A DNA stretch of 64,000 nucleotides from the NCBI GenBank assembly GCA_004764695.1, contig SMSO01000032.1:3194483-3258482 (forward strand), read 5' to 3'. The notes under the pieces are model-generated. The model was not told the origin of the DNA, did no database searches, and saw only the letters and a program-made list of their open reading frames with translations. Below are positions 15,873 through 24,443 of this stretch, one piece after another. Position 1 is the first letter of the stretch. Every line of letters begins with the position of its first letter. Source of the DNA: Schizochytrium sp. TIO01. Lineage: Eukaryota; Protista; Bigyra: Labyrinthulomycetes. A program made the translations under genes and the position numbers.

Positions 15873-18800
15873 TTAATTCAAAATATAAGGGCCTAGACAT
15901 CCCAATGCTCCACGAAAGGTAACGTTTGCAACTTCCAGCAAATCAAGCTCTACTTTCTGCGCAGCAAGATAGTCATCTTTCAGACTCAGCTCACCAAAGC
16001 TGTTAGCAGGCCAAGCTTGTGTAAGAAGACTACGCTTCACTGAAAACGGCAGACTAAATACATTGTTTATAACATGTATACAACGAAGCTCACGAGATAT
16101 CTGTTCAAGCATTTTCCTTCTTGTCTTTGCAGAACAAATTTGCTTATTCAACTCGAGCTCCTTGTACATTTCATCCGTCAATTCATCGGACATTCTAAGG
16201 ATCGGTAAAAACCAAATGACATCAACTCCGTTCGTCAGTTAACAATTTCACGTCATCAAAAGGCACCCACAGTATTGCCAGTAAGTTTCATTTATTCTCT
16301 GATATTATCATGTTCTTTGTTACATCTACAATCAACCAAACAAACAATTCCGCAACAAACTTGCAATGACGCGAAGAAAAACATCGGCAAAACAACACCG
16401 TAGACAACCCACGACGCAACCAACCAACCAAGTCTCATGTACAAACAAGTCCACGAGCTATTGCTTAAACAACTTACGATAGTAATGTCAGCGACCAGTT
16501 CACTTTCAGCGCCGCAGCCACTGCCATGGCGCCCTCTGAGCCGATTTCGTTCTCCTCAAGACTGTCGATTTGATTGAATGATGGCAAGCAACACATTACA
16601 CGTTACATATTACAATAGATGCACGCATGCATGCATGGACGTGAGTAATCTAGGTTGGCTTTCAGCATTTATCTTTGTTGTGTTGTCATTTTGCTCTTTG
16701 TTCGATGGATGTATACTCACTCAAACCGACAACTCATCCATCCATCAAACAAACAAGCGATTGCATAAACTTGCAAAACAACACCGACCCACCCACCAAA
16801 CAACAAACCAAGCATCATGTACAAACAAGTCCACGAGCTGCGGTGTTGCGTAGACAACTTACTATAGTGATGCCAGCGACCGGTTCTCTTTAAGCGCCGC
16901 AGCCACTGCCTTGGCGCCCTCGTCGACGATTTCGTTCCACATAAGACTGTCGATTTGATTGAATAATGGCAAGCAATACATTACACGTTACATATTACAA
17001 TAGATGCACGCATGCATGCATGGACGTGAGTGATCTAGGTTGGCTTTCAGCATTTATCTTTGTTGTGTTGTCATTTTGCTCTTTGTTCGATGGATGTATA
17101 CTCACTCAAACAGACAACGCATCCATCCATTAAACAAACAAGCGATTGCATAAACTTGCAAAACACCGACCGACCCACCAAACAACAAACCAACCATCAT
17201 GTACAAACAAGTCCACGAGCTGCGGTGTTGCGTAGACAACTTACGATAGTAATGTCAGCGACCGGTTCTTTTTCAGCGCCGCAGCCACTGCCTTTGCGCC
17301 CTCTGAGCCGATTTTGTTCGCAGTAAGACTGTCGATTTGATTGAATGATGGCAAGCAATACATTACACGTTACATATTACATTAGATGCACGCATGCATG
17401 CATGGACGTGAGTAATCTAGGTTGGCTTTCAGCATTTATCTTTGTTGTGTTGTCATTTTGCTCTTTGTTCGATGGATGTATACTCACTCAAACAGACAAC
17501 GCATCCATCCATCAAACAAACAAGCGATTGCATAGACTTGCAAAACAACACCGCCCCACCCACCAAACAACAAACCAAGCATCATGTACAAACAAGTCCA
17601 CGAGCTGCGGTGTTGCGTACACAACTTACTAAAGTGATGTCAGCGACCGGTTCTCTCTCAGCGCCGCAGCCACTGCCATGGCGCCCTCGTCGCCGATATG
17701 GTTGCATCCAAGACTGTCGATTTGATTGAATGATGGCAAGCAATACATTACACGTTACATATCACAATAGATGCACGCATGCATGCATGGACGTGAGTGA
17801 TCTAGATTGGCTTTCAGCATTTATCTTTGTTGTGTTGTCATTTTGCTCTTTGTTCGATGGATGTATACTCACTCAAACAGACAACTCATCCATCCATCAT
17901 ACAAACAAGCGATTGCATAAACTTGCAAAACAACACCGACTCACCCACCAAACAACAAACCAAGCATCATGTACAAACAAGTCCACGAGCTGCGTTGTTG
18001 CGTAGACAACTTACTTGAGTAATGTCAGCGACCGGTTCTCTTTCAGCGCCGCAGCCACTGCCTTGGCGCCCTCTGAGCCGATTTTGTTCTCTTTAAGACT
18101 GTCGATTTGATTGAATGATGGCAAGCAATACATTACACGTTACATATTACAATAGATGCACGCATGCATGCATGGACGTGAGTAATCTAGATTCGATTTC
18201 AGCATTTATCTTTGTTGTGTTGTCATTTTGCTCTTTGTTCGATGGATGTATACTCACTCAAACAGAAAACGCATCCATCCATCAAACAAACAAACGATTG
18301 CATAAATATGCAAAACAACACCGACCCACCCACCAAACAACAATCCAAGCATCATGTACAAACAAGTCCACGAGCTGTGGTGTTGCGTAGACAACTTACG
18401 ATAGTGATGTCAGCGACCGGTTCTCTTTCAGCGCCGCAGCCACTGCCTTGGCGCTCTCGTCGCCGATTTTGTTCGCAGTAAGACTGTCGATTAGATTGGA
18501 TGATGGCAAGCAATACATTACATTGCAATGCATTACATTGGATGCACGCATGCATGCATGGACGTGAGTGATCTAGGTTGGCTTTCAGCATTTATCTTTG
18601 TTGTGTTGTCATTTTGCTCTTTGTTCGATGGATACATACTCTCTCAAACAGACAACGCATCCATCCATCAAACAAACAAGCGATTGCATAAACCTTCAAA
18701 ACAACACCGACTCACCCACCAAACAACAAACCAACCCTCATGTACAAACAAGTCCATGAGCTGCGGTGTTGCGTAGACAACTTACTTGAGTAATGTCAGC

Positions 18801-21800: not shown

Positions 21801-24443
21801 ACCAAACAACAAACCAACCATCATGTACAAACAAGTCCACGAGCTGCGTTGTTGCGTACACAACTTACTTGAGTGATGTCAGCGACCGATTCTCTTTCAG
21901 CGCCGCAGCCACTGCCTTGGCGCCCTCTGAACCGATCTGGTTGCAATAAAGACTGTCGATTTGATTGAATGATGGCAAGCAATACATTACACGTTTCATA
22001 TTACAATAGATGCACGCATGCATGCATGGACGTGAGTGATCTAGGTTGGCTTTCAGCATTTATCTTTGTTGTGTTGTCATTTTCCTCTTTGTTCCATGGA
22101 TGTATACTCACTCAAACAGACAACTCATCCATCCATCAAACAAACAAGCGATTGCATAAACTTGCAAAACAACACCGACCCACCCACCAAACAACAAACC
22201 AACCATCATGTACAAACAAGGCCACGAGCTGCGGTGTTGCGTAGACAACTTACTTGAGTAATGTCAGCGACCGGTTCTCTTTCAGCGCCGCAGCCACTGC
22301 CTTGGCGCCCTCGTCGCCGATCTTGTTGCTTTCAAGACTGTCGATTAGATTGAATGATGGCAAGGAATACATTTCACGTTACATATTACAATAGATGCAC
22401 GCATGCATGCATGGACGTGAGTGATCTAGGTTGGCTTTCAGCATTTATCTTTGTTGTGTTGTCATTTTGCTCTTTGTTCGATGGATGTATTCTCATTCAA
22501 ACAGACAACTTACCCATCCATCATACAAACAAGCGATTGCATAAACTTGCAAAACAACACCGACCCACCCACCAAACAACAAACCAAGCATCATGTACAA
22601 ACAAGTCCACGAGCTGCGGTGTTGCGTAGACAACTTACTTGAGTGATGTCAGTGACCGATTCTCTTTCAGCGCCGCAGCCACTGCCTTGGCGCCCTCTGA
22701 GCCGATATAGTTGCCGTCAAGACTGTCGATTTGATTGAATGGTGGCAAGCAACACATTACACGTTTCATATTACAATAGATGCAATAGATGCACGCATGC
22801 ATGCATGGACGTGAGTGATCTAGGTTGGCTTTCAGCATTTATCTTTGTTGTGTTGTCATTTTCCTCTTTGTTCCATGGATGTATACTCACTCAAACAGAC
22901 AACGCATCCATCCATTAAACAAACAAGCGATTGCATAAACTTGCAAAACAACACCGACCCACCCACCAAACAACAAACCAACCATCATGTACAAACAAGT
23001 CCACGAGCTGCGTTGTTGCGTAGACAACTTACGATAGTGATGTCAGCGACCGGTTCTCTTTCAGCGCCGCAGCCACTGCCTTGGCGCCTTCGTCGCCGAT
23101 GCGGTTGCTTTCAAGACTGTCGATTTGATTGAATGATGGCAAGCAATACATTACACGTTACATATTACAATAGATGCACGCATGCATGCATGGACGTGAG
23201 TGATCTAGGTTGGCTTTCAGCATTTATCTTTGTTGTGTTGTCATTTTGCTCTTTGTTCGATGGATGTATACTCACTCAAACAGACAACTCATCCATCCAT
23301 TAAACAAACAAGCGATTGCATAAACTTGCAAAACAACACCGACCCACCCACCAAACAACAAACCAACCATCATGTACAAACAAGTCCACGAGCTGCGTTG
23401 TTGCGTAGACAACTTACGATAGTGATGTCAGCGACCGGTTCTCTTTCAGCGCCGCAGCCACTGCCTTGGCGCCTTCGTCGCCGATGCGGTTGCTTTCAAG
23501 ACTGTCGATTTGATTGAATGATGGCAAGCAATACATTACACGTTACATATTACAATAGATGCACGCATGCATGCATGGACGTGAGTGATCTAGGTTGGCT
23601 TTCAGCATTTATCTTTGTTGTGTTGTCATTTTGCTCTTTGTTCGATGGATGTATACTCACTCAAACAGACAACGCATCCATCCATCAAACAAACAAGCGA
23701 TTGCATAGACTTGCAAAACAACACCGACCCACCCACTAAACAACAAACCAAGCATCATGTACAAACAAGTCCACGAGCTGCGGTGTTGCGTAGACAACTT
23801 ACTTGAGTGATGTCAGCGACCGATTCTCCTTCAGCGCCGCAGCCACTGCCTTGGCACCCTCTGAGCCGATCTCGTTGAATTCAAGACTGTCGATTTGATT
23901 GAATGATGGCAAGGAATACATTACACGTTTCATATTACAATAGATGCACGCATGCATGCATGGACGTGAGTGATCTAGGTTGGCTTTCAGCATTTATCTT
24001 TGTTGTGTTGTCATTTTGCTCTTTGTTCGATGGATGTATACTCACTCAAACAGACAACGCATCCATTCATCCATCCACCCATCCAACAAACAAACAAACA
24101 AACCAGCCATTGCATAAACTTGCAAAACAATAACAACAAAAGCAACACCGTGCAAAGCAAGCAAGCAAGCAAGCAAGCAAGCAAGCAAGCAAGCAAGCAA
24201 GCAAGCAAGCAAGCAAGCAAGCAAGCAAGCAAGCAAGCAAGCAAGCAAGCAAGCAAGCAAGCAAGCAAGCAAGCAAGCAAGCAAGCAAGCAAGCAAGCAA
24301 GCAAGCAAGCAAGCAAGCAAGCAAGCAAGCAAGCAAGCAAGCAAGCAAGCAAGCGAGCGAGCGAGCGTCTTAACTTACTTTAGTGTTGTAGCGCCATTCT
24401 GAAGCTGTTCAAGAGCAGCGACAACACGTGGGTGGTCTGACAT
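15873..24443 (-). CDS. Spliced 22-exon gene: cytosolic RI-like/NLRC3-like leucine-rich-repeat protein, 20 LRRs, predicted 688 aa
   Basis: Exon 1 is 24443-24379 (ATG; MSDHPRVVAALEQLQNGATTL). Twenty 84-nt exons follow: 23886-23803, 23501-23418, 23116-23033, 22722-22639, 22337-22254, 21952-21869, 21567-21484, 21182-21099, 20797-20714, 20412-20329, 20027-19944, 19639-19556, 19254-19171, 18869-18786, 18483-18400, 18098-18015, 17713-17630, 17328-17245, 16946-16863, 16561-16478. The last exon is 16194-15873 (the 106-aa ORF). All donors are GTAAGT, all acceptors CAG (last one TAG), all introns phase 2, and there are no stops. 65+20x84+322=2067 nt=689 codons. Repeat consensus xLxxNxIG(S/D)EGAKAVAAALKENRSLT(S/L)L. 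Confidence 0.92.
16431..24130. repeat. ~385-bp tandem array, 20 units (84-nt LRR exon plus ~301-nt near-identical intron)
   Basis: CAACTTAC...A(A/G)ACTGTCGATT(T/A)GATTG recurs mostly every 385 bp (range 382-394). Confidence 0.97.
24157..24367. repeat. (GCAA)~49 then (GCGA)3 microsatellite inside intron 1 of the LRR gene
   Basis: Perfect GCAA run at 24157-24352, ending just before the exon-1 donor (ACTTAC at 24373-24378). Confidence 0.97.

Follow-up and report, generated by a model that had tools for sequence, protein, structure and literature searches.

Positions 15873-24443 of a 64,000-nucleotide stretch of the Schizochytrium sp. TIO01 genome (GenBank assembly GCA_004764695.1, contig SMSO01000032.1, positions 3,194,483 to 3,258,482; this whole stretch is referred to as the window) carry, on the minus strand, a tandem array of near-identical units, each encoding one leucine-rich repeat (LRR). 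We regard the array as probably a germline, spliced, protein-coding gene, one of a family numbering at least about 100 members whose predicted concave faces are under selection. An earlier note, made from the DNA letters without database searches, had described hypervariable codons at the predicted binding surface of these repeats and had proposed diversifying selection or targeted diversification, for example in an anticipatory intracellular sensor of viruses or parasites. Our analysis supports diversifying selection for amino-acid change at the codons of the predicted binding surface, and gives no sign of a dedicated mutator or of somatic change. The window gene has the appearance of one representative of a large, inherited family of recognition proteins, not of a self-mutating receptor.

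Structure of the LRR gene

The gene is intact and comprises 22 exons encoding 688 amino acids; the coding sequence, with exons joined locally, is 2067 nt long and consists of 688 codons and a single terminal stop. A 65-nt first exon and a 322-nt last exon enclose 20 LRR exons of exactly 84 nt, all on the minus strand and located from 23803-23886 down to 16478-16561, where the earlier note had placed them (Table 1). Each LRR exon encodes one ribonuclease-inhibitor (RI)-type LRR of 28 residues. All 21 of the introns are in phase 2 and read GTAAGT..YAG; every LRR exon opens with base three of a split codon, and its last two bases start the next codon. With all internal introns in this phase, a unit can be gained, lost or skipped without disturbing the frame. 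Tandem Repeats Finder describes the same DNA as 19.9 copies of a 385-bp unit (16417-24071, 92% matches), and on the minus strand there is one 84-nt open segment in each unit, between an upstream ..CAG and a downstream GTAAGT.

These features hold across all loci of the sample, where acceptors are AG in 359 of 361 cases, donors are GTAAGT in 353 of 361, and a stop codon is found in just one of ~194 distinct LRR exons. The first exon recurs together with its 5' flank at a minimum of 40 places in the genome, with 89-100% identity, and the last (tail) exon has at least 101 genome copies, most of them open. The N-terminus of the 688-aa protein is hydrophilic, and no membrane segment was detected in the protein (19-residue hydropathy windows peak at 1.36).

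Two departures from uniformity were seen within the array. The ladder asparagine, which is retained in 197 of 202 units genome-wide, is exceptionally replaced by isoleucine in LRR exon 8. The introns that follow LRR exons 12 (19640-19943, 304 nt) and 15 (18484-18785, 302 nt) contain short patches that are divergent or carry insertions or deletions, and show low ungapped identity; introns are otherwise homogenized.

Hypervariability is concentrated in defined codons

Variation in the LRR exons is concentrated in codons 2, 3 and 5, the hypervariable (HV) codons, which encode positions x7, x8 and x10 of the LxxLxLxxNx motif, and in the codon split by each intron (the junction codon), which encodes x5 of the next repeat. 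The list of residues given in the earlier note proved exact, with 14 distinct x7-x8 pairs among the 20 repeats and with 10 different residues at the first of the three sites, 9 at the second and 7 at the third; the junction codon alternates between Asn, Ser and Tyr as described (AA/T, TC/T and TA/T, where the slash marks the intron). Nucleotide diversity (pi) within the window array is 0.60 for the HV codons, 0.33 for the junction codon, 0.083 for the remainder of the exon and 0.071 for the introns, and the eight most variable of the ~385 columns of the unit all lie within the nine HV positions. The HV codons are more divergent than the adjacent non-coding DNA, in agreement with the earlier observation, and this holds in ~200 units genome-wide.

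The genome sample consisted of ~25 arrays in addition to the window and yielded ~200 distinct units (198-202); all counts drawn from it are lower bounds. Across these units pi at the three successive bases was 0.74, 0.68 and 0.69 in codon 2, 0.71, 0.49 and 0.42 in codon 3, and 0.68, 0.25 and 0.60 in codon 5, a range of 0.25-0.74 with eight of the nine positions at or above 0.42, compared with 0.088-0.092 in introns; the junction bases have a pi of ~0.65. The synonymous third bases of the neighboring codons 1, 4 and 6 remain at background (pi 0.11, 0.06 and 0.09), so the variability is codon-precise and not regional. Each HV codon specifies 15-16 different amino acids (198 distinct units), with Ser, Arg, Gly, Gln, Glu, Asp, Tyr, Lys, Asn and Trp the common residues at the variable sites. 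There are 120 distinct 9-base HV types. Identical types turn up on other contigs, and the HV string of each array is its own; that of the window gene is unique in the sample.

Selection at the hypervariable codons

The residues permitted at these sites are restricted. No stop codon was found among the HV codons of 202 units, where ~24 + 5 + 8 would be expected if bases were drawn independently at their observed frequencies, and T is nearly missing from second codon positions, which indicates that aliphatic residues are avoided. A one-base neighbor exists for 73 of the 120 HV types, compared with 44.5 under codon shuffling, and the pairs separated by a single step comprise 66 nonsynonymous and 4 synonymous differences (expected synonymous share 0.19; binomial p 0.0013). 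Nei-Gojobori estimates for the HV codons are a nonsynonymous divergence (dN) of 1.18 and a synonymous divergence (dS) of 0.81, a ratio of 1.47 with both rates saturated; the framework codons give a dN of 0.042 and a dS of 0.051 (dN/dS 0.83), and the intron distance is 0.085. The dN of the HV codons is 14-23 times these neutral yardsticks (framework dS and intron distance).

Changes were also counted on a tree built from flanks only. The three HV codons require 135, 109 and 106 changes, in total 337 nonsynonymous and 13 synonymous; the junction codon requires 86, framework codons ~10, and intron bases 4.6 each. By every measure computed, all of them counting methods, dN/dS at the HV codons lies above 1, as the earlier note had anticipated. 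The synonymous third base of Leu27 has a pi of 0.66 and requires 75 changes on the flank-only tree, all of them synonymous. The donor-site patch of three bases takes the main forms CAA, TGA, ATC and ATA.

Exchange between repeat units

Unit pairs were ranked by the similarity of their flanks. Where the flanks diverge by less than 0.5% the HV codons are identical in 14 of 14 pairs. At flank divergences of 0.5% or more, the HV codons of closest-flank pairs show either no difference or differences at 2-8 of their 9 bases; a single-base HV difference was seen in one closest-flank pair, in the most divergent bin (flank divergence >8%). Over 4.5 kb, three near-identical copies of an array, two on contig C30 and one on contig C5, show 7 differences in introns, 1 in the framework and none among 99 HV bases. 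Two multi-base swaps of the donor-site patch (ATA to CAA; ATC to CGA) also separate these copies, and each product is a common allele elsewhere.

HV codons 2 and 3 are linked (p 0.0005). No linkage was detected between the HV patch and the junction patch of its own exon, 65 nt away, or between the HV patch and the junction patch of the previous exon, which is adjacent to it in the mRNA and for which an mRNA-templated process predicts linkage. The same HV triple is shared by 8 of 142 neighboring unit pairs, indicating recent tandem duplication; LRR exon 3 is identical in sequence to LRR exon 2 and is likewise a recent tandem duplicate.

Taken together, these patterns fit a diversity generated by germline diversifying selection together with gene conversion or unequal crossing-over. 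Of the two processes offered in the earlier note, diversifying selection is supported, on the 66:4 ratio and the dN of 1.18. Targeted diversification is not supported, given HV-identical young duplicates and patch swaps that look templated. The anticipatory reading finds no support either, in view of the 14 identical pairs, the three copies without an HV change and the lack of visible variation within sequencing runs.

Codon 8 is dimorphic, with Ser (TCA) and Asp (GAC) present at 128:65 genome-wide; the two forms differ at all three bases, intermediates are very rare, and the dimorphism is unlinked to junction type. This points to two old subtypes of the unit that now recombine freely.

Fold of the repeat and location of the variable residues

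Database and fold searches were run exon by exon or on database proteins. Compared with the PDB, a single LRR exon matches a ribonuclease-inhibitor-like protein (E 9e-10), NOD2 (5irm; E 7e-7), DRC5 and tropomodulin, repeat after repeat. Single 27-aa exon translations hit the Pfam family LRR_6 (PF13516) with E values of 8e-4 to 0.04, but their scores of 14.5-19.8 bits fall short of the 23.4-bit cut-off. The AlphaFold2 (AF2) model of a distant relative, P0002, shows regular strand-helix repeats, with a predicted local distance difference test score (pLDDT) of ~80 in the LRR part. Foldseek matches of this model were to tropomodulin/leiomodin, NOD2, NLRP1, axonemal LRR proteins and the ribonuclease inhibitor RNH1.

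The equivalents of the junction residue and of x7, x8 and x10 fall in the strand or the loop that follows it in the P0002 model, and not in the helix, which is in keeping with the concave ligand surface that the earlier note had assumed. The sequence motif and this model support a predicted placement of x5, x7, x8 and x10 in the strand/loop part of the RI-type LRR; in LRR proteins the x positions of xLxLxx point to the concave side (PMC3341825).

Transcript and assembly evidence

Contigs from four public sequencing runs were aligned to 15750-16960; such contigs drop rare variants. One contig of run X18 joins 16561 to 16863, omitting exactly the predicted 301-nt intron 16562-16862 between LRR exons 19 and 20, and the skipped segment has CT..AC ends on the plus strand, corresponding to GT..AG in the coding direction. 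In run X15, contigs pass from framework through a foreign junction-plus-HV patch to the next framework and represent spliced paralogues. Neither the intron skip nor an exon-exon junction was found in the contigs of the DNA run X1. Marine-eukaryote transcriptome (MMETSP) open reading frames (ORFs) also carry the tail domain, and P0002, a transcript-derived MMETSP protein, combines five RI-type LRRs and the tail in one ORF.

No alternative letters were found at HV codons in the contigs of the four runs, the DNA run among them, over LRR exons 19 and 20, a weak observation as it comes from contigs. Assembly error is an unlikely source of the variation, because the differences are multi-base and respect codons, and because the same HV types recur on other contigs.

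The tail domain and the ROC-TIR paralogues

The tail is a lineage-specific domain of 106 aa, modeled by AF2 as a long helical hairpin (helices at 2-45, 50-58 and 72-105; pLDDT 73). The tail exon has no match to a Pfam family, its model has no fold match in the PDB, and no usable neighbor was found in the ESM Atlas; among 1.84 billion representative proteins there were 5 matches, all of them MMETSP ORFs. The window gene is without a signaling domain, its first exon being a half-LRR cap and its tail lacking a Pfam match. At four loci elsewhere in the genome, as judged by coordinates, arrays of the 385-bp unit are followed within ~1 kb on the same strand by Roc and then TIR_2 matches in open frames of 850-870 aa (Table 1), which indicates that the LRR module is shared with LRR-ROC-TIR genes.

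A proposed model for the diversification of the family

In the model that we propose, unequal crossing-over and short-tract conversion, within arrays and between chromosome ends, would keep introns and framework ~92% identical by concerted evolution. The same exchanges would carry short patches among units, comprising exon bases 5-16 and the three donor-site bases. Selection at the four solvent-facing positions (x5, x7, x8 and x10) would block homogenization there and fix new nonsynonymous point changes. With each module contributing one 28-residue RI-type LRR, the outcome would be a horseshoe protein with a concave face unique to its gene and, genome-wide, a repertoire of faces. As neither a signal peptide nor a membrane segment is present, the protein probably resides in the cytosol or the nucleus; its concave face may bind a variable protein ligand, and the helical tail may mediate assembly or hand-over to a partner. 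As a hypothesis only, we suggest immune-type recognition as the most likely role, given that LRR-ROC-TIR reading frames at other loci of this genome have identical modules as their sensor arm.

Several points weigh against this account. The location of the variable sites on the concave face is a prediction, taken from the model of a distant relative and from textbook LRR geometry. Splicing of the window gene itself is backed by one short contig; the putative RNA runs cover introns too, and among the runs aligned no contig joins LRR exon 20 to the last exon. Within the HV codons dN/dS is no higher than 1.47, as both rates are saturated, and selection was measured by counting tests whose single-tree assumption is broken by recombination. 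The third base of Leu27 equals the junction codon in variability and changes in step with the junction dinucleotide, which implies that some of the diversity comes from the copying of old patch alleles and not from new adaptive substitutions.

A bolder extension of the model makes the subtelomeric rDNA spacers an engine of diversity: frequent exchange between chromosome ends would constantly re-deal more than 120 face patches across at least 100 LRR genes, both tail-only and ROC-TIR, at a rate high enough for clonal lineages of one strain to differ in repertoire. This would amount to a recombination-based analogue of anticipatory immunity, germline or mitotic, in a unicellular host of mirusviruses. 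We think it distinctly unlikely.

Alternative explanations

The alternative that fares best is an endogenous, non-immune form of recognition, which we judge unlikely. The proteins would serve as adaptors or inhibitors, whether ribonuclease-inhibitor-like, cytoskeletal or axonemal, or as partners of rDNA or telomere chromatin; co-evolution with a second variable family of the host would shape their faces, and the position in an rDNA spacer would reflect a role at chromosome ends. The best matches do include axonemal LRR proteins, tropomodulin/leiomodin and ribonuclease inhibitor besides NOD2 and NLRP1, the window gene carries no signaling domain, and the rDNA-spacer location recurs at many chromosome-end-like loci, for whose repeats the published view proposes a chromosome-end role. 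However, a housekeeping partner would not need more than 100 distinct faces with a nonsynonymous excess, the same modules are fused to ROC-TIR frames, and the residues at the variable sites, many of them acidic, are unlike a nucleic-acid-binding code.

It is also conceivable, but in our estimate quite improbable, that no adaptive diversification has occurred, and that four unconstrained surface positions have become saturated with age as concerted evolution erased divergence elsewhere. The saturation of synonymous positions inside the HV codons and of the Leu27 third base is what this would produce; the framework dN/dS of 0.83 implies that homogenization, and not purifying selection, explains much of the framework identity, and the young duplicates show no change in HV codons. 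Conversion that homogenizes bases 1-3 nt away would, however, also homogenize neutral codons, yet the third bases of codons 1, 4 and 6 stand at 0.06-0.11 beside values of 0.6-0.7. The single-step differences, at 66 nonsynonymous to 4 synonymous, and the absence of stops against ~38 expected, together with the avoidance of T at second positions, indicate that the type of residue is under selection.

Programmed or somatic diversification, in which a mutator or cassette copying rewrites the patches within a lifetime or clone, as in lamprey variable lymphocyte receptors (VLRs) or diversity-generating retroelements (DGRs), appears very improbable. In its favor, patches are replaced whole, as multi-base blocks, or not at all, variability follows codon limits exactly, and the mRNA brings together the four variable residues, which an intron separates in the DNA. 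Against this, the germline gene is complete and open, and the youngest pairs are HV-identical, including all three copies of the C30/C5 array, although their introns already differ. The swapped junction patches are all pre-existing alleles, as ordinary conversion between near-identical flanks predicts; the junction of one exon is unlinked to the HV codons of the next, contrary to an mRNA-templated process; and the four runs offered no alternative HV letters, with the caveat on contigs given above. DGRs employ a template repeat and a reverse transcriptase and make adenine-specific changes; here all four bases vary at HV positions and the swapped patches existed beforehand, in an analysis in which no search aimed at a template or a reverse transcriptase was made.

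That the array is a non-coding satellite with an accidental open frame, or an assembly artefact, has a negligible probability: it was published as a tandem repeat without GenBank similarity and its single exons score below the Pfam gathering threshold, but the frame is open in 20 of 20 exons here with one stop in ~194 elsewhere, splice signals are near-invariant, spliced contigs exist, conserved first and tail exons flank the arrays, an exon matches RI-type LRRs of the PDB at E 9e-10, and the antisense ORFs of 91-95 aa present in most introns (16578-24133, plus strand), by comparison, are not genes, with a dN/dS of 0.97 in their own frame and five copies interrupted.

Comparison with known systems

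A close parallel is with the LRR-ROCO genes, candidate receptors, of the brown alga Ectocarpus (Zambounis et al., 2012, PMC3341825; brown-algal ROCOs, PMC11378527), which are also stramenopile genes with one LRR per exon and introns of the same phase. There each repeat is a 72-nt exon subject to exon shuffling, with selected sites on the concave face identified by model M8 (PMC3341825); the parallel of one repeat per exon drawn in the earlier note is correct. Selected sites lie on the concave xLxLxx face in both, here by counting tests and a predicted placement, and paralogous arrays in the present genome are likewise followed by a ROC GTPase frame. By contrast, the exon here is 84 nt and encodes a 28-residue RI-type repeat in place of a 72-nt, 24-residue unit, the introns are ~92% identical tandem copies, and the arrays lie in rDNA spacers. 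ROC-COR is missing from the window gene, which closes with a novel helical tail, and the ROC-bearing paralogues also carry TIR.

Tetrahymena possesses ~50,000 LRR exons of exactly 90 bp, with more than 96% of introns in phase 2, in a family of thousands of members that has a subtelomeric link, grew by unequal crossing-over and has a LINE-like element implicated in it (PMC6564038, 2019). It resembles the present family in its arrays of exon/intron units, in the fixed length of the LRR exon and in the identical phase 2 codon split; it differs in being from a ciliate, in its 90-nt as opposed to 84-nt exons and in having no rDNA association. The main text of that paper makes no mention of positive selection or hypervariable sites (PMC6564038).

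The DNA itself corresponds by unit size and position to group 0 of the LORE-TEARS of Aurantiochytrium limacinum, a ~385-bp repeat situated between 18S and the 5S gene closest to it (bioRxiv 10.1101/2023.06.15.545109); in both, the unit is ~385 bp, the array lies between 18S and 5S, and the 5S gene is transcribed away from the rDNA. The stramenopile origin supposed in the earlier note agrees with this published architecture. LORE-TEARS were described as long repeated spacers without GenBank similarity and with a possible role in chromosome-end maintenance (bioRxiv 10.1101/2023.06.15.545109). The 362-bp and 412-bp repeats beyond the 28S gene of the window fit the published spacer classes group 2 and group 1, respectively, by size and position, the counterparts in A. 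limacinum being ~366 and 406 bp; no LRR motif was found in them in any frame. The differences are that the paper mentions no exons or leucine-rich repeats, whereas the units here read as genes, and that 20 units are present here as against a typical ~9.

Lamprey VLRs and plant NLR and PGIP proteins concentrate diversity on solvent-exposed strand positions of LxxLxLxxN (restated in PMC3341825), the same strand positions as here. VLRs differ in being secreted or anchored proteins of capped 24-residue LRRs whose incomplete gene is assembled somatically from cassettes, whereas the germline gene here is complete and no somatic change was seen; NLRs contain a NACHT or NB-ARC domain, which is absent from the window gene. 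The repeat-variable diresidues of TAL effectors offer another likeness, in near-identical tandem repeats kept uniform by recombination with a few variable codons in each, but these proteins have a different fold, read one DNA base per repeat and have repeats without introns, and nothing here suggests a code of one repeat per unit. The present case is set apart from the Ectocarpus and Tetrahymena systems by the RI/NLR-type 84-nt exons, the very high intron identity, the rDNA-spacer site, the novel tail, the ROC-TIR paralogues and DNA that had been published without a coding reading.

A published genome feature takes on another reading: the rDNA spacers called universal and subtelomeric in a model thraustochytrid seem to contain a large family of expressed, recognition-type proteins and not purely structural repeats. 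Few natural examples allow so clean a separation, base by base, of concerted evolution from diversifying selection; synonymous sites beside saturated codons stay at background diversity. The theme of exon-per-LRR receptors, seen in brown algae and ciliates, here reaches a third lineage and the RI/NLR-type repeat, with ROC-TIR fusions. Aurantiochytrium is culturable and transformable and carries mirusviruses; should the ligands bound prove to be viral or parasitic, it would be a tractable system for the evolution of a protist immune repertoire.

Table 1. Features of the LRR gene, its surroundings in the window and the ROC-TIR paralogues. Residues of LRR exons are given as x7 and x8, a point, and x10, followed by the junction residue; a slash marks the exon border. 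Coordinates with a contig name (C) refer to that contig and all others to the window.
Feature	Position	Strand	Remarks
Exon 1	24379..24443	-	ATG (24443-24441) + 21 codons + 2 bases; half-LRR N-terminal cap; ends CTAAA/GTAAGT
Intron 1	23887..24378	-	492 nt; (AAGC)53 microsatellite at 24155-24366
LRR exon 1	23803..23886	-	EF.E, junction N
LRR exon 2	23418..23501	-	ES.R, junction S
LRR exon 3	23033..23116	-	ES.R, junction S; identical to LRR exon 2
LRR exon 4	22639..22722	-	DG.Y, junction N
LRR exon 5	22254..22337	-	ES.K, junction N
LRR exon 6	21869..21952	-	YC.Q, junction N
LRR exon 7	21484..21567	-	KW.E, junction N
LRR exon 8	21099..21182	-	DG.K, junction N; ATC (Ile) instead of ladder Asn
LRR exon 9	20714..20797	-	RS.Y, junction N; used for PDB and Pfam matches
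LRR exon 10	20329..20412	-	DG.K, junction S
LRR exon 11	19944..20027	-	TA.K, junction N
LRR exon 12	19556..19639	-	QH.D, junction S
LRR exon 13	19171..19254	-	SY.K, junction N
LRR exon 14	18786..18869	-	QE.E, junction N
LRR exon 15	18400..18483	-	TA.K, junction S
LRR exon 16	18015..18098	-	KE.K, junction N
LRR exon 17	17630..17713	-	GC.H, junction Y
LRR exon 18	17245..17328	-	TA.K, junction S
LRR exon 19	16863..16946	-	MW.E, junction Y
LRR exon 20	16478..16561	-	EE.E, junction S
Last exon	15873..16194	-	1 base + 106 codons + stop; helical tail; preceded by a 283-nt intron
5S rRNA gene	24915..25033	+	~470 bp upstream of the LRR gene's ATG, in divergent orientation
18S-5.8S-28S rDNA unit	6578..12091	-	Same direction as the LRR gene, 3.8 kb downstream of its stop
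362-bp tandem repeat	314-1805		4.1 copies, 76% matches; beyond 28S
412-bp tandem repeat	3544-5592		5 copies, 87% matches; beyond 28S
Array + Roc + TIR_2	C35:2637098-2645810		
Array + Roc + TIR_2	C32:39531-46258		
Array + Roc + TIR_2	C30:6626-12637		
Array + Roc + TIR_2	C13:4004961-4010957		

Other observations in and around the window

The search of Rfam gave no match inside the LRR array. Two fuzzy matches to the framework elsewhere in the window, at ~40.2 kb and ~61.9 kb, were discarded as they lie in unrelated ORFs. A second array with a tail exon lies 26-31 kb before the window start in the opposite orientation (C31:3163793-3168627, plus strand). The window (C31:3194483-3258482) is interior to a contig of 9.04 Mb and contains no telomere repeats. 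The arrangement looks like two chromosome-end-type structures placed head to head, either through a scaffold join or as a true internal rDNA pair.

Upstream of the LRR gene, a tRNA-Gly(GCC) gene is found at 26016-26086. Beyond it, a 1041-aa ORF on the minus strand (26400-29525) contains Cys-rich modules and 12 copies of a 39-nt repeat (27657-28128) encoding Pro/Thr-rich spacers; its C-terminal part resembles, by eye, a von Willebrand A domain.

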